In this document: piece by piece, positions 39,063 through 58,479 of the stretch
Layout: the number at the start of each line of letters is the position of its first letter
Numbering within the stretch: position 1 is the first letter of the stretch
Assembly: GCF_964204645.1 (NCBI RefSeq)
Contig: NC_134035.1
Span: 1,860,001-1,924,000, forward strand
DNA: 64,000 bases
Reading direction: 5' to 3'
Source of the DNA: Tubulanus polymorphus
Taxonomy: Eukaryota > Animalia > Nemertea
Notes under the pieces: model-generated
Database searches by the model: none
What the model was told of the DNA's origin: nothing
The model's input: only the letters and a program-made list of their open reading frames with translations
Position numbers and translations under genes: made by a program

Positions 39063-40613
39063 TCAATCCGTCTTGATTTTCGCTTTTTTATTTGTGCACC
39101 TTTTAATTCGAACGCAGATACTCGATGTTAGAATGACGCATACCGCCGTTAACAGCACTCCTAATACGACAATATCAACCATCAATATTTCAAACATAGA
39201 CAATTCATCTTGCGAAAATTCGAATTGTTTCGGGCCGTATTTCACGATCTGTTCTATAACGTGTACGATTCGATTTACCGGTTCGACTAGAAAATCTTTG
39301 CGTATTTTCGAAGCCGTTTCGATGTTTTGTTCGTAAGATTTATCGCCCAGGACGCTTCTGATTTTATTGACAATATCGTAAACGGCTCCCGGTCGTCGAA
39401 TATCGACGGTTAGGCCGAATTTTTTATGATGTAGACGCTGGCAGTTGTACGGTTGGTCGCCGGTTATCGGGTTTCCTATCATCGGTACCCCGTGGTACAG
39501 TGCCTCGTACATACCGTTATTGCCGCAGTGTGTTACGAAAAGCTTTACGTTAGGATGCCCCAATAGATCGTTCTGTCCGATCCACGTATCGTTGTATACG
39601 TTTTCCGACAATCTAACCAACGACGCCGACATGTCGACCTTCCAAACGAACGATAGCTCCTTCATTCGTACGAAAACGGCCGCGAAATCTCTCGCCAGAT
39701 TCTCCGGTAAACGGTCGATTTTCGTACCGAACGACACGAGCACGACGCCCCGTTCGGCGGCCTCGACGAATCGGCGCAGACGGTCGGGTAACGGTCGCGC
39801 CGGTCGAGGCGTCAGTCCCCCAATCCAGAAAACATTCGGCGTGCGAATGCGTTTCGCGTCTAAAAGTCCATCGGCCTCGATAAACCAAACCTTGGTCACT
39901 CTACGCGCTATATCCATCGATTCTCGATCGTAAAACAACCACGAAAATATCTGAATCATGAAGTATTCGGATAGATTCTTTATCCGTTCGCGAAAATTCC
40001 ACCGGTCGCTGCCGCCTGACATGAAAGTTTTAGTAATCGATGGCAGACGCGTAACTGGCGGCATCCAGGGCCAGGTCTGAACGGAGGTCAGACCGGCCAC
40101 GGGCGCGCCCAGTTTTTCGGCAATTTTGTACAGGCATAACGACGGCCCGAACGAATCTAACAAAATCGCGTCGAAGCGAATGGCTTCCAATCGTTTCAAC
40201 AACGAATCGCCGCTCGCTTCTAAATCTCTGCATTGCGGTGAACTGACCTCTCGGAATAGTTTAACCTCCTCATCAGTACCGGCGAAATTGACGTAATTCT
40301 CGACCGTTTTTCTTCTCAAATACGTATCGTTAAACGGATTATTACAACTCGATTCGTATCGGATGAAAGTGGTGACCGAATCGCGTATAATGCTCGGTAT
40401 AGGAACGGCTGTTTCTGGTAATACCATATACACGCTGTGACCACGTCGAGTTAACTCTGCAGCTATAGGCTCCATTTCTATTATATGACTGTACCATAGC
40501 GACGGTAGCAAGAGAATCTTACCGCTTCCATCGCCGTGAAGAGCGTGGCCGTATCGCGATACTATAGACACGCTGAGTATTACCCAAACTGGTAAAGCTA
40601 ATTTGAGAAACAT
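39063..40613 (-). CDS. UDP-glycosyltransferase (UGT family 1, ER membrane type), intronless
   Basis: First ATG at 40613 (MFLKLALP..., signal peptide). Catalytic His in WYSH; UGT signature WIGQNDLLGHPNVKLFVTHCGNNGMYEALYHGVPMIGNPITGDQ; C-terminal TM helix and KxKxx ER-retrieval tail (KIKTD); AATAAA about 20 nt after the stop. Confidence 0.95.
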   Translation of the reverse strand: MFLKLALPVWVILSVSIVSRYGHALHGDGSGKILLLPSLWYSHIIEMEPIAAELTRRGHSVYMVLPETAVPIPSIIRDSVTTFIRYESSCNNPFNDTYLRRKTVENYVNFAGTDEEVKLFREVSSPQCRDLEASGDSLLKRLEAIRFDAILLDSFGPSLCLYKIAEKLGAPVAGLTSVQTWPWMPPVTRLPSITKTFMSGGSDRWNFRERIKNLSEYFMIQIFSWLFYDRESMDIARRVTKVWFIEADGLLDAKRIRTPNVFWIGGLTPRPARPLPDRLRRFVEAAERGVVLVSFGTKIDRLPENLARDFAAVFVRMKELSFVWKVDMSASLVRLSENVYNDTWIGQNDLLGHPNVKLFVTHCGNNGMYEALYHGVPMIGNPITGDQPYNCQRLHHKKFGLTVDIRRPGAVYDIVNKIRSVLGDKSYEQNIETASKIRKDFLVEPVNRIVHVIEQIVKYGPKQFEFSQDELSMFEILMVDIVVLGVLLTAVCVILTSSICVRIKRCTNKKAKIKTD

Positions 40614-42203
40614 TTTCTTTGCGCAATCTAGCCAACTACAAATACCTAGAAAACGGAACAATGAACAGATTATGATCCTAGATGACGTATAGAATAGTTT
40701 AGCTTTTTTAAAAGAATACCTGCCAATTCAATATCTTAAAACTATTAAAGAAAAGATACAATTCAGATATTATCCGTAAAATGTCCGGTTTGTGATTCCA
40801 AATTACCTTTGTAGCCAATTGATTCCTACGTTCATACGATTCAATTAGCGTTAACCGCAATATATCTACGCACAATTATATATACAACTTGTGTATAATG
40901 TTTCTTACTTATAGATATTTCAGTTACTGTGTTTTAATGATAATGAACTGAGTTGTTGTTGAAATTGACAATGTTCAAGTACGTCCGTATATCATACGCC
41001 CGTATAAATGTACCAAAATAATGACCCGATCTGCCGACCTTTTATCAAAAACGTTATCGCAATTCGTGCGCACTTAATTTACTTCAAACGAATAAAAACT
41101 ACTTTTGATTTTGTTTTATATTATGTTACGCGCAGACGTAGGTCCGGAAGAGGTCTTCACCTGGTTTTTTGTTTCTTTTGTGAACATCAATGAATCATAT
41201 GGAGAAATTGCAGCTACAACAAACGTTGATAAACGAACGTAACATAGATTTATTTTTTTAACGTTTCCGGATTTTTACTAAACCGCATTGGCAGAGAAAC
41301 GATTGTAATCTCTGTAATTAGTAGATTTAGTTCAAATCGCTGACAATTCCCTCGTTAACCTCGACGCGTGGACCTCGCCTTCATCAACTGCACCAGGACT
41401 GTCAACGTGTGCCGTGAAAAGTTCCCTAAACACGCGTTACATTTGAAACTCTTACAATTCTACAACAGACCATGTACCATGAAACGATTTAGAGTCCACG
41501 AACGGACACATCTTCAATAGACGACAATATGAACTTCATCGCGATACCGTCCTGCTGCCACCTGAACAGCAACCCACCAGCTACTTCAGTCTACCTAAAC
41601 CGAAAGTGGGAACAATAAATTTACATATTATCAATTGTGGGCTCATTTATCGACTTCAGGAATCGAGCAGTATACCTCAGTCTCTATCGTACCAGTCATA
41701 TATATTCTAAACGGTATTCGCATCCCCGACTTATATACACAATTCGCTAACGCGGCGATACGAGAAATCTCCGGCTTGAAACGGCTCGTAAAAAACCGGG
41801 CGCAGATTTCCTCGAATTCAACGCGAATTGTTTATCTAACTTTTCAGCCGCTACTGTGTTGGCTAATTAAGATGAAAAAATAACATTGATCGAATTTTTG
41901 GCGCTTATCATCTGGGTGATAAGACGGCTAATGAAATCATGTCGTGCGCGCGCGCGGCGCTACTATACACACACCACACACACTAACACTGTTCTAAAAC
42001 AAGGACGATCGAACCGAAGACATCGAGTTGACCTAAAGAATGGCGTTTGATAACGGGCCGAAATTCGATATAAGCGTTTATAATTAATCACTGATCGAAT
42101 TGTGCGCAGTGTCGTATGATTTCATGTGTAAACTCTGACAGTCGGAATGAGTTTTATATGCGCGTACGCGTCATAAACAGATCATTGCGCAATCGTTTTG
42201 CGG

Positions 42204-52024
<9,821 letters not shown>

Positions 52025-53210: not shown

Positions 53211-54170
53211 ATGGACAACGGATCCGAAAGTTTGACCATCGATTTGGTGAAATCTTACAGCGCCGGGTTCGTCAGCTCGATGACGTCGACGTCGACTCTA
53301 AATCGCCGGCTTTATTTCTATTTGTACGTCGTATTTTTACCGCTCGGTTTCGCCGGTAATTTTCTATCGTTCGTCTTGATGGTTCTGTCGAAACAGATGC
53401 GCGCCACGTCCTATTCGATATACCTGGCCCAGTTGGCCGTATTCGATACGATATCTTTATCGTACTATCTACTCGGCTGGTTGAACGTTCTCGGTTACTA
53501 TCTATCGCTGGACGAAGCCATCGTGACGTTCGAGTCGTCGATACGGTGCAAACTCGTGGAGATATTTCACGATATGGGCGTCGAAGGCGGTCACTTCACC
53601 GTGGTCATCATTGCCATCGAACGAGTGTTCGTCGTCGGGTTCCCCTTTCGCGCCAAACGACTCTGCACCAGAAAACATTCGAAAGTCGTCTGCGGATGTT
53701 GTACGACTTACGTCATCGGCGAATCGATATGGCGCGGAACGGTGCCCAAATATCGGCCGGATTTCGGTTGTTATTTCAACGCGGAAGACGTTCCCTTGGA
53801 TTACTTTCACGGCCTGACGATGTATATGCTGTTACCGGTGGCGATCGTTTTTATTTGTAACGCCATAATCGCTAAAATCACGTTCCTCAGCAGTAACGCG
53901 TTCGACGCTGCTAGCGATCACAAACGCGCCCAAACGATGAAAGTAACGCTGACTTTATTCGTTATTTCGATGACGTTTTTACTATTCAGCGTACCGTTGT
54001 GCGTCCCGTTGATTATTCTGGGTGCGGGTCTGGGTGACAAGCAGCAACTGTACGCCCTATCCGACACAACTACAATCATACTCGGCCTCAACTACGGGGT
54101 CAACTTTTATTTGTACATTCTTACGGGAAAACAAATCCGCGCCGCCTTATCACAACTTTTCTGCGGTTAG
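53211..54170 (+). CDS. Orphan rhodopsin-family (class A) GPCR, intronless, peptide-receptor-like
   Basis: 319 aa with seven hydrophobic segments. TM1 GN, TM2 LAVFD, TM3 Cys and IERV, PF in ICL2, TM5 LP, TM6 FSVP, TM7 NFYLY, and an N-terminal NGS sequon. Confidence 0.9.
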   Translation: MDNGSESLTIDLVKSYSAGFVSSMTSTSTLNRRLYFYLYVVFLPLGFAGNFLSFVLMVLSKQMRATSYSIYLAQLAVFDTISLSYYLLGWLNVLGYYLSLDEAIVTFESSIRCKLVEIFHDMGVEGGHFTVVIIAIERVFVVGFPFRAKRLCTRKHSKVVCGCCTTYVIGESIWRGTVPKYRPDFGCYFNAEDVPLDYFHGLTMYMLLPVAIVFICNAIIAKITFLSSNAFDAASDHKRAQTMKVTLTLFVISMTFLLFSVPLCVPLIILGAGLGDKQQLYALSDTTTIILGLNYGVNFYLYILTGKQIRAALSQLFCG

Positions 54171-54503
54171 TTCTTTTCTTAAATGGAAAAATATTTTTCG
54201 GCGCGCAAAATTTTTCAGAAGGTTCGAATAGAAATCCCCAGAAATTCCATTAAAGGTCGTCGACAAAAATTGGCTTCGATTTCTGACGAAACAACTAAGT
54301 GTAGAGCAAAAATAGAATCACGTGAATAACATTACACTACACGGCTAAGAGGTTTTTGAAATGAATTTTCTCTGAACTGAATGACACTCGAATAGTCTGT
54401 CTGGAACATAACAAAATCCTATAGCGAACTTTATATACTCTCTAACTAAAAACGGTGTAACGCACAAGTCCAAAGTTGTGGCATCTTACGCCAGCGAGCG
54501 AAT

Positions 54504-56430
54504 ATGCGACGCCAACATCTCTGTGTCGTAATTGGCTTGATAGTCGTTACAATCTCATCACTTGGGAATTTCAAAAAAGGTACGTCCGCTTTCGGATCCA
54601 TATTGCCACGATGGAAGAAAGTTTTAACAAAGCGTAAAAGTTCTGTTGAAATAGTAAAGAATATCATCAAGCTAATGACTACCACAAAACTCAATCAGTT
54701 GATTCGGAACTGTGTGCATATACGTAATCTATGTAATTTCAACGAGTTCAATTCTTATTCATTAATGTATGAATTTTCTACATATATCTGAAGCTATAGA
54801 GATTGTGATCACCAAAACGAACAAAAAGTGTTTCCTGCCGTTTAGATACAACGGTACGTTATACACTGATTGTATACCAGGGGGCGCTGGTAATCTGTCT
54901 TGGTGCAGTTGGACTCCTTTCTATTCCGACACTACGTGGGACTACTGCCCACCAACGCGTTCCAGTAAGTGTGCAAAATATTGCCAATGAAATTTTCCTG
55001 CTTACATTTTCATAGAAAAAAAAACTGTGGGAAATCGCTACTCCACCCCTCCTATTTTAAAAGATTTTCTGAACGAGCCCCTAAGCTTATACACCGAGTA
55101 AGCCACGACCGACCCCCCCCCCTTCTAATCCTGGATCCATCGCTGTTAAATGTTAACTTGTGTGTACAGTTTTAATGCTCAAGTTTCAAAGTTTATTTTG
55201 CTCCATATCTTACAAAAGAAATTGAGCACAGACAATTCTGTCATAGAACACACATTACAAGGTGGCCAAAAGTCAGTGATGAATATATTCTTTTGAAAAT
55301 TGACTAAATTATGACGTTCAAATTTTTCAATTGCAGACGAAAAGGTGATGACGAATCGGCGGAAGCTGTGTTATTTACCGTTTCACTATCGCGGACGAAT
55401 ACGTCACAAGTGCGTGCCGGGTAACGGCCGTTTCCCGTGGTGCAGTTTTCAGCCGTTTTTCGTCGACGGTTCGAAAAACTGGGGTTACTGTTGGAAAAAA
55501 CGTAATGGTCAGTATTGAAAAAAGAAACAAAGGCGATTTTCTGATACCGCAGGTTGAAACGGCTCGTGAAAATGTCTCTGATCTGGTCGGAATCAGGATT
55601 GATCAAAGCTACGCATAAACATATAAACATCTTTTTTTATTTCTGTCCAATTTTTAGGTAGAATCATCGAAACGGACAAAGGAATTAATTGTTATTTGCC
55701 ATTTTACTACGAAGGAGTTTATTACGAGCAATGCACGAGTTTTCGTCACGATCGACCCTGGTGCGGTATTGATGGAGTCGTAGGAAGGTGGGCAAACTGT
55801 CTGTATAAAAAAAACAATTCTACAAATAATACCCAAGCTGGAGATAATGGTCAAGCCGGCAATAATGGTGCAAATAATGGTCAAGCCGGCAACAATGGTG
55901 CAAATAATGGTCAAGTCGGCAACAATGGTGCAAATAATGGTCAAGCCGGCAACAATGGTGCAAATAATGGTCAAGCCGGCAACAATGGTGCAAATAATGG
56001 TCAAGCCGGCAACAATGGTGCAAATAATGGTCAAGCCGGCAATAATGGTGCAAATAATGGTCAAGCCGGCAACAATGGTGCAAATAATGGTCAAGCCGGC
56101 AACAATGGTGCAAATAATGGTCAAGCCGGCAACAATGGTGCAAATAATGGTCAAGCCGGCAACAATGGTGCAAATAATGGTCAAGCCGGCAATAATGGTG
56201 CAAATATTGGTCAAGCCAGCAACAATGGTGCAAATAATGGTCAAGCTGGTAACAAGGGTGCAAATAATGGTCAAGCCACCAATAATGGTGCAAATAATGG
56301 TCAAACTGGTAACAATGGTGCAAATAATGGTCAAGCCGTCAATAATGGTGCAAATAATGGTCAAACAACAAGGGGAAATGGCGGTAGAGCCTGGATTCCA
56401 GGAGGGTTTTCCGGGAAAGTTGTTGGCTAG
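54504..56430 (+). CDS. Secreted protein: signal peptide + 3 fibronectin type II domains + (NNGANNGQAG)17, ~396 aa
   Basis: Exons 54504-54579, 54794-54964, 55337-55507 and 55658-56430, with all introns phase 1. Each module fits C-x2-PF-x-Y-x-G-x2-(Y/R)-x2-C...WC...W-x2-C: CFLPFRYNGTLYTDC..WC..WDYC, CYLPFHYRGRIRHKC..WC..WGYC, CYLPFYYEGVYYEQC..WC..WANC. Confidence 0.85.
55861..56370 (+). repeat. Coding 30-bp tandem repeat, 17 copies
   Basis: Unit aa(c/t)aatggtgcaaataatggtcaagccggc. Confidence 0.97.
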
Positions 56431-58479
56431 AAACCGTTCGTGAAAACACTAGCCTCAGTACCTTCCACTAATTTGTAAAGGGTCTTAAGGCACTGTAAAT
56501 ACTGATCCAAATTAAAAACGATACAGGTATACTGATTCAAAACGCCAATCAATAGAAATTACTTCGCTGTCTTCCAATGCCCAACATGGTCCAATGAAAG
56601 GTCCTTAAATCTCATCCCACGATTCGAATCAGTAGAATCCGAGGTGACGGTCGAATGAGCGAAAAAGGGGTAGCTCCGATAATATTTAAATCGCCAGCAC
56701 TGTAAATTGTATTTCATTTTATAGACTGGTTTACCGGTCTCTATCTTCGCATATTGAATGGGACAGGCAACCAGTCTAATCATTTTACATAAAAATAGGC
56801 TGATGCATTCCACTATTTCTCCACCTCTGATCGTATACATTTTCCTGAGGCTTTAGGTACCAAAAATGTACGGTGTGGGGGAAATATTTTCGAGTTAAAG
56901 ACAGTAATCATATTCAATAAAACGAATCTTTGGTACAGTTAAAGCAGACGGTGATTTGACTCGCGAATATATTATGCGTTGATCGGAGAATGTCTGACTG
57001 TCGTCGTTTCCACACCAGTCTCGATAAAATTTTCCACTTACAGCGTCCACAACTCTCATGTTCGTTATCTTATCAAATACAGGTAGTGATTTACATGCAT
57101 ACCAAACTGTATACGTGTCGCCACGATTTATTAATAGTCGCATTATGAACAATAATGCGCGCGATTCAAGTTGTTGAACTTCGTTCAAATATTTCCGATT
57201 TCGCACTTAATAATTTTTGTTACTGGTTCGATAAACTAAGGTTGTTATATTTCATTTTTTTGGTACAAGTATCTCTTCCACATTTCTGATCAAAACCAGG
57301 TCATAATGATAGATAATCAAGCATCGTTTGGTTCATTAACGAGGCTGCCAGTACTCAATGACATTGTTTGCTGTAACTTCTGAAAAATATGAAAGTTTAT
57401 GTCTATACTATTATGTACATTGTAGCTTATTATAGATTATCGAATTATTAATCTATTATCATTTAGTTCATTAACTAGGCTGTTGCATTGTAGTCGTTTT
57501 CTTCAAGTATGTCCCTTTTTTCAAAGCCTGAACTATAAATTCATACCTAGATACTTCTGTTCTTGCGATACCCCGATGTAAATAACCTATACATAACCTT
57601 CTCTGTTCTAGTGGTGAAACTTTGCTCAATCTGGCGCGATATTCATCAAAAAAGGTATCAAATCATTTACATATAACACCATAAATGACTGTTGTGTATT
57701 GTTGCTGTTTGTTCTATAACTGATCAGATCTCGATGCTACGATTCCGCTATATTGTACTTCATTGTAATTTTTGGGTTTTTTGTTCTGTGTAATAAAATA
57801 TACTGACTGAGACAGGACGCTGCAAATTATTTGACATTTTTAGTTTGTTCGTATATATTTCATTATGTATATATCAAGTGTATGTCCTCGATCTATGCAA
57901 CTGAATTGTGATTATCCGACCGCTTCACGCCGGTATCCCACGCCGGTGTTGAGACTCGATGATCACATGTCCCCGCGTTAAATCTTCACCTGTTGACGCG
58001 TTTTTCAGTCATTTAAAAATGTGTTATAACATTCATACACTCATTTTGACACCCAGCCAATTGCGACGAATAAAACAGGTAATGATATAATACGATATTT
58101 TCCCCCTACGCACTTGGCTTACGAAATCACACACACACGAAATTTCCCGGCGACAGAAACTCAAAATCGAACGCGTTCGGTTTCAGTTCTAAAAAATCAG
58201 TTTTAAAGCGATATTTCTTTTTAACATCAACCGTGTGATCGACAACTGCGTGTAAAACCTCACGTAAAACTGCGACAGTCGATACTGAAGTTTATCAAGT
58301 GTTAGATAGCGAACTCGACAACGCGCCACGCACGTAGACTGATATAGAAATTAATGTCCAACGCCGACTGTGCTAATACTAAAACTAATCCGACGACAAC
58401 GTGGTTCTCTGTGTTGTGTATTGTGCAGCGTTCATGGTTTCTCTGTTCGACGCGTGTAGCGTTCTCAGCATCATTATCT

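Follow-up and report, generated by a model that had tools for sequence, protein, structure and literature searches.

The BSP proteins and ELSPBP1 are vertebrate reproductive-tract proteins built of two to four FN2 modules, and any N-terminal extension in them is short. The protein predicted from the locus described here, which lies in a 64,000-nucleotide stretch of DNA from the ribbon worm Tubulanus polymorphus (the window), resembles these PDC-109-type proteins in that its FN2 modules stand in tandem, that it appears to be secreted and that it has no catalytic domain. Among solved structures, PDC-109 is also the nearest to two of its modules (modules 2 and 3). However, whereas BSP proteins and ELSPBP1 have no long C-terminal repeat, here module 3 is followed, within the same exon, by a repeat and tail of about 200 residues.

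Three FN2 modules in a row, with the same cysteine and aromatic signature kept, are also present in the collagen-binding domain of MMP-2 and MMP-9 and in the gelatin-binding region of fibronectin, but the protease and FN1 contexts of those proteins are absent here, and FN2 is the only globular part. FN2 modules bind either collagen and gelatin (MMP-2/9, fibronectin and the mannose receptor) or choline lipids and heparin (BSP proteins) (PMC6211748 and established knowledge).

For the repeat that follows the modules, a preliminary description of this DNA had pointed to the mollusc shell proteins nacrein and N66. These carry Asn/Gly repeats with calcium-binding roles, in the form of Gly-Xaa-Asn triplets that have Asp, Glu or Asn at Xaa and lie inside a carbonic anhydrase (PMC6599672). 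Like the predicted protein, they are secreted and have a tandem repeat rich in Asn and Gly. However, the unit here, NNGANNGQAG, is a neutral decapeptide that contains Ala and Gln, it is mounted on FN2 and its core has a single acidic residue; no Pfam domain other than fn2 was found in the gene. With the acidic triplets and the carbonic anhydrase both lacking, the analogy does not hold.

Gene model and FN2 modules

A four-exon intact reading runs along the + strand of the window from 54504 to 56430, beginning with an ATG at 54504 and ending with a TAG stop at 56428-56430. The predicted protein is about 390 residues long. The features of the locus are:

54432-54437, + strand: TATA-like hexamer, 72 nt 5' of the ATG (pattern scan, consensus match only)
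54504-54579, + strand: exon 1, signal-peptide-like leader (25 codons plus 1 nt; aag followed by the donor GTACGT)
54794-54964, + strand: exon 2, FN2 module 1 (domain 54829-54948; cca followed by the donor GTAAGT)
55337-55501, + strand: exon 3, FN2 module 2 (domain 55369-55491)
55658-56430, + strand: exon 4, FN2 module 3, repeat and stop (domain 55690-55800)
55831-56370, + strand: coding minisatellite, one degenerate unit and then 17 units of 30 bp, (NNGANNGQAG)17
56511-56516, + strand: polyadenylation-type signal ATTAAA, 81 nt 3' of the stop (consensus match only)

All introns are of the GT..AG type, all are in phase 1 and all are sited at module borders. Phase-1 borders are the exon-shuffling class known for FN2 modules, and the introns here fit that class. 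Between the TATA-like hexamer and the ATG there is an in-frame stop (54447), after which 54504 is the first ATG. The leader encoded by exon 1 has a basic n-region followed by a hydrophobic core of about 15 residues (9-residue Kyte-Doolittle peak of 3.5) and is a putative signal peptide. Exon 2 has an alternative in-frame acceptor, with a start at 54800, and encodes two N-x-S/T sequons; exon 3 has an alternative phase-1 donor after 55507. In exon 4, a short N-glycosylation-type linker joins module 3 to the repeat, after which come 19 unique residues and the stop; the frame is open, with no earlier stop codon, all the way from module 3 to the TAG. A pattern scan of the interval from module 3 to the stop revealed no strong donor-like site, so the tail would be translated if exon 4 is used as read. 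A second polyadenylation-type signal, AATAAA, is located at 56916.

The three modules all score above the curated cut-off of Pfam fn2 (PF00040; 22.2 bits), with 40.2 bits for exon 2, 33.2 bits for exon 3 and 28.4 bits for exon 4. Searching the whole genome in six frames recovered the same three FN2 sites, collinear and on one strand. Each module has four cysteines, and all twelve are kept. In a multiple alignment, the signature C-x2-PF-x-Y-x-G ... C ... WC ... W-x2-C is invariant in the three modules, and positions C12, P15, F16, Y18, G20, C26, W36, C37, W48 and C51 remain invariant when FN2 modules from outside the gene are included. Pairwise identity among the three modules is only 27-42%; because the signature is invariant despite this divergence, the modules look like maintained folds and not like a decayed relic. 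They are also mutual closest relatives, modules 1 and 2 being reciprocal best genome matches at 43-46% identity. The alignment thus points to an old internal triplication, after which the folds would have been maintained.

In comparisons with solved structures, the closest to module 1 are the FN2 modules of MMP-2, MMP-9 and fibronectin (E 9e-12). Module 2 is nearest to the FnII domain of factor XII and to PDC-109, and module 3 to domain a of PDC-109, with which it has in common a short loop between the third and fourth cysteines. A feature of module 2 is its strongly basic character (pI 10.1, with 12 Lys/Arg versus 2 Asp/Glu). On this reading of the sequence, the gene is real and intact.

Composition and predicted state of the repeat

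Tandem Repeats Finder places the array at 55844-56364, with a period of 30, 17.4 copies, 93% matches, 0% indels and a score of 923. Read in the frame of module 3, the array gives one degenerate leading unit and then 17 NNGANNGQAG units, after which the protein ends in 19 unique residues (...RAWIPGGFSGKVVG). The 180-residue core consists of 37% Asn, 28% Gly, 18% Ala and 11% Gln. It is not of the mucin PTS type, with 2.8% Thr, 0.6% Ser and no Pro. Two of its residues are charged, one Lys and one Asp, for a net charge of zero. Exon 4 as a whole encodes 34 Asn-Gly pairs. The anatomy set out in the preliminary description, a leader followed by three FN2 modules and a long polar repeat, is thus borne out by the exon model, the Pfam scores and Tandem Repeats Finder, and its accounts of a strongly basic second module and of an almost uncharged Asn/Gly/Ala/Gln repeat were also correct.

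The tail is likely to be disordered, flexible and hydrated. In a charge-hydropathy analysis it falls on the disordered side (mean hydropathy of 0.339, against a boundary of 0.413). An AlphaFold2 single-sequence model of exon 4, which is weak evidence, has a mean pLDDT of 35.7, with values of 31-34 throughout the tail, and shows no confident fold. The units do not match the ordered repeats with which they might be compared. Gly occupies unit positions 3, 7 and 10, a spacing of 4, 3 and 3, and not every third position as in collagen-like, polyproline-II and snow-flea antifreeze repeats. Leu and Phe are absent from the units, and no position could serve as the hydrophobic core of a pentapeptide-repeat or other beta-solenoid. 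A beta-solenoid had been put forward for the tail, and both the lack of such a position and the pLDDT of 31-34 argue against one, although the tail has a marginal periodic match to the designed beta-solenoid 4yfo (E 0.0011). By composition only, the core is of the prion-like or polar-zipper kind, with 37% Asn plus 11% Gln, no net charge and low hydropathy; Asn/Gln-rich composition is typical of prion-like, amyloid-prone sequences.

Searches for relatives

Similarity searches were run exon by exon, with each exon as a separate query. A word search of 5.8 billion proteins returned no match for exon 4, and the best 150 matches of an exhaustive search against 1.84 billion representatives included no protein that combines FN2 with such a tail. 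The matches of exon 4 in the exhaustive search form two separate classes, multi-FN2 proteins on the one hand and low-complexity proteins on the other. The nearest matches on the FN2 side, most of them auto-named ELSPBP1-like, belong to corals, an anemone, amphioxus, a shrimp and a sponge; small secreted proteins made of FN2 only are widespread, occurring in corals, anemones, amphioxus and a sponge.

On the tail side, the nearest matches are uncharacterised Pro-containing decapeptide proteins with 54-58% identity over the tail. The krill protein CAL4125238.1, (PNFQNNGQPG)n, and the proteins P0137 and P0018 are, like the tail, made of ten-residue units with NNGQ-G, but they contain Pro and Phe and have neither FN2 nor any Pfam domain. 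The similarity of the decapeptide proteins to the tail is most likely compositional and not due to homology.

Within the T. polymorphus genome, a protein search with exon 4 gave 149 matches. As candidate paralogues, those inspected were rejected, being unrelated minisatellites with a ten-residue period, many of them with stops. A genome search with the repeat DNA found no match elsewhere. An ESM Atlas feature search gave no usable match, and an exact look-up of the neighbouring GPCR in the window retrieved no record. In the literature, two studies of nemertean mucus proteomes do not mention fibronectin, mucin or collagen, searches for FN2 in marine adhesives matched only fibronectin type III, and searches for decapeptide Asn/Gly repeats led to reviews only.

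The genome contains at least 65 FN2 modules by six-frame search. A scan of FN2 clusters for fused repeats covered part of the genome's loci, and the genes described here were the only ones found there. Two of them, besides the present one, fuse FN2 to a very long tandem repeat. The first (G000:C1:30617021-30625372) has an exon of 1345 residues that comprises a hydrophobic anchor, dozens of Thr-rich, basic 12-residue units and an FN2 module. Its mucin-like Thr-rich repeat is more than 1000 residues long, and about eleven further FN2 exons lie downstream. In the second (G000:C10:10606171-10608595), an exon of 652 residues consists of dozens of acidic Ser/Glu 9-residue units and then FN2. Both genes thus have a long tandem repeat and FN2 within one exon, as here. 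However, their repeats precede FN2, whereas the Asn/Gly repeat follows it, and the three repeats (Thr-rich and basic on C1, acidic Ser/Glu on C10 and neutral Asn/Gly here) have no sequence relationship. The proposed design of an anchor plus a polymer fits, by analogy, with the two fusion genes.

Interpretation of the locus

The reading that we favour, and in which we have moderate confidence, is that of an intact, lineage-specific T. polymorphus gene for a secreted matrix or mucus protein, in which an FN2 anchor carries a disordered polar tail derived from a young minisatellite. We infer the secretion of the protein, its ligand, its tissue and its role. The three FN2 modules, produced by internal duplication, would form the ligand-binding end and would hold the protein on a collagen-type matrix, by analogy with MMP-2/9, fibronectin, the mannose receptor and the BSP proteins. 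The very basic module 2 may additionally bind acidic glycans. The (NNGANNGQAG)17 array would be a young in-frame minisatellite, translated as an uncharged, flexible and strongly hydrated polar chain, and this chain may serve as a spacer or a cohesive polymer in mucus, a tube lining or basement matrix.

It is rather unlikely, though it has to be weighed seriously, that the gene is real and its tail functionless. The protein would then be an ordinary small three-FN2 protein, ELSPBP1-like or BSP-like, in which a neutral minisatellite has expanded in frame and is tolerated, its copy number probably varying between individuals. The widespread occurrence of small secreted FN2-only proteins in invertebrates is consistent with this, as is the fact that none of the relatives found shares the tail. 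The array itself is also consistent with it: nine of its central units are identical in DNA or one synonymous base apart, with decay confined to the 3' end. So close an identity implies that the tail is very young, and it may be neutral variation in length. Moreover, 30-bp minisatellites are frequent in the genome, and because such arrays are common, the 30-bp period is uninformative on coding. However, the C1 and C10 genes carry far longer repeats fused to FN2, which suggests that the repeat-plus-FN2 design is used and not accidental, and the 17 units here have neither an indel nor a stop. The substitutions argue weakly in the same direction. In the NNGANNGQAG frame, 11 of the 22 differences between units are synonymous, compared with 22% expected, the highest share of any frame; when each distinct change is counted once, the excess is not significant (p 0.11), and as a sign of the coding frame it is only suggestive.

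More doubtful still is a silent or mis-modelled gene, that is, a dead or unexpressed FN2 duplicate, or a transcript that ends or splices before the repeat, so that the tail is not protein. What speaks for it is first that the exon 4 protein is absent from the public protein set although T. polymorphus has an NCBI annotation. A single-exon UDP-glycosyltransferase of the window (39063-40661, - strand) does have a 100% identical public protein. Because exon 4 is absent publicly while this enzyme is present, the gene seems to be unannotated; presumably the NCBI annotation did not call it, or the entry was withheld. Second, the array can also be read without a stop in two of the three forward frames and in two reverse frames, and the substitution test did not reach significance. 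Annotation pipelines routinely mask such repeats, however, and a dead duplicate would be hard to reconcile with four intact exons that have phase-matched canonical splice sites, a leader, a TATA-like site and a polyadenylation-type signal, or with twelve cysteines and an aromatic signature kept at the low identity noted above. An early end by splicing is countered by the lack of a strong donor from module 3 to the stop.

Asn-Gly is the most deamidation-prone dipeptide known. A bolder proposal, which we regard as improbable, is that the tail is a chemical timer whose Asn-Gly pairs deamidate, so that a fluid, collagen-anchored film hardens or swells on schedule. Within days in alkaline sea water, the chain, neutral at first, would become an Asp/isoAsp polyanion, which could bind divalent cations or the basic module 2 of neighbouring molecules. 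FN2 would then be the anchor shared by all members of a modular kit of ribbon-worm materials, the Thr-rich and acidic proteins among them.

Finally, a specialised material tail, whether a nacrein/N66-type crystal modulator, an ice-binding, polyproline-II or beta-solenoid array or an amyloid polar zipper, is very improbable: Asn and Gln do make up 48% of the core, and the nacrein/N66 repeats and the 4yfo match are the other points in its favour, but the Gly positions, the single acidic residue and missing carbonic anhydrase, the lack of a hydrophobic core position and the low pLDDT all tell against it, as does the host, a palaeonemertean. We know of no shell, stylet or mineralised parts in palaeonemerteans, and the shell role suggested earlier is out of place in such a host.

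If expressed, the protein would be a chemically unusual addition, with its neutral, Pro-free and Asn-Gly-rich tail, to the secreted proteins of ribbon-worm mucus, tubes and matrix, of whose molecular make-up, to our knowledge, almost nothing is known. Taken alone, the gene would represent a modest case of lineage-restricted domain shuffling and minisatellite expansion. Taken together with the Thr-rich and acidic fusions, it suggests that this lineage uses FN2 as a general means of anchoring widely differing payloads to matrix, an idea that is testable and relevant to bio-inspired adhesives and hydrogels.

The combination of domains had been described as unfamiliar. This stands in so far as the searches found no such protein, and does not stand for the broader design, since FN2 recurs next to low-complexity sequence of other chemistries. 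In a nidovirus of planarian secretory cells, FN2 modules are predicted alongside disordered regions and have been discussed in relation to the accumulation of the virus in mucus-secreting cells (PMC6211748); there, however, single and very divergent modules form part of a viral polyprotein, and there is no tandem decapeptide repeat. FN2 joined to a low-complexity polymer is thus recurrent, and the novelty here lies in the chemistry and position of the polymer. The predicted product is a secreted-type protein of tandem FN2 modules plus a low-complexity polymer, and its Asn/Gly tail was seen nowhere else among the sets searched. Unnamed proteins of metagenomic and run-derived origin likewise pair FN2 with a low-complexity region; one of the run-derived ones joins collagen triplets to three FN2 modules and a tail rich in Ser.

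Neighbours of the FN2 gene in the window

Three genes or gene parts neighbour the four-exon gene that encodes the three FN2 modules and the (NNGANNGQAG)17 tail:

53211-54170, + strand: rhodopsin-family GPCR, a single exon of 319 residues (Pfam 7tm_1, 53.7 bits)
47415-47735, + strand: exon for an intramolecular chaperone domain, Peptidase_S74 (E 5e-11)
39063-40661, - strand: single-exon UDP-glycosyltransferase (Pfam UDPGT, 209 bits)

The GPCR ends approximately 330 bp upstream of the start codon of the FN2 gene, and a search for identical sequences returned no public entry for its product. In animals, the Peptidase_S74 domain is typical of transcription factors of the myelin regulatory factor type. 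The UDP-glycosyltransferase belongs to a set of several paralogues within the Tubulanus polymorphus genome.

Minisatellites with a ten-residue period

Minisatellites with units of approximately 30 bp, the translated period of which is ten residues, are abundant in this genome (for example, contig C9:1954750-1955331, locus L032; C7:16139826-16140341, L036; and C9:12756897-12757418, L037), and some have several open frames. They give rise to misleading periodic protein matches for any decapeptide repeat.

FN2 modules and repeats in other genes

The closest relative outside the genome of module 3, the FN2 module in exon 4, is locus L050 (54% identity), which lies on a 633 kb eukaryotic contig of ENA assembly ERZ26692762. 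There, near-identical FN2 exons form a tandem array, split into 200-residue pieces by prokaryote-style gene calling. An example of FN2 joined to a polymer tail outside the T. polymorphus genome is P0163, a 650-aa protein from a public sequencing run, in which three FN2 modules occur together with a stretch of collagen Gly-X-Y triplets and a low-complexity tail rich in Ser.

Within the T. polymorphus assembly (G000), a gene on contig C1 (30617021-30625372; loci L052 and L025) has an open exon of 1345 residues, comprising an N-terminal hydrophobic anchor, dozens of basic, Thr-rich, mucin-like 12-residue units and an FN2 module, with approximately 11 more FN2 exons downstream. The gene product looks like an FN2 mucin, either secreted or membrane-anchored. 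On contig C10 (10606171-10608595; locus L051), dozens of acidic 9-residue Ser/Glu units precede an FN2 module in an open exon of 652 residues, and a second FN2 module lies close downstream.
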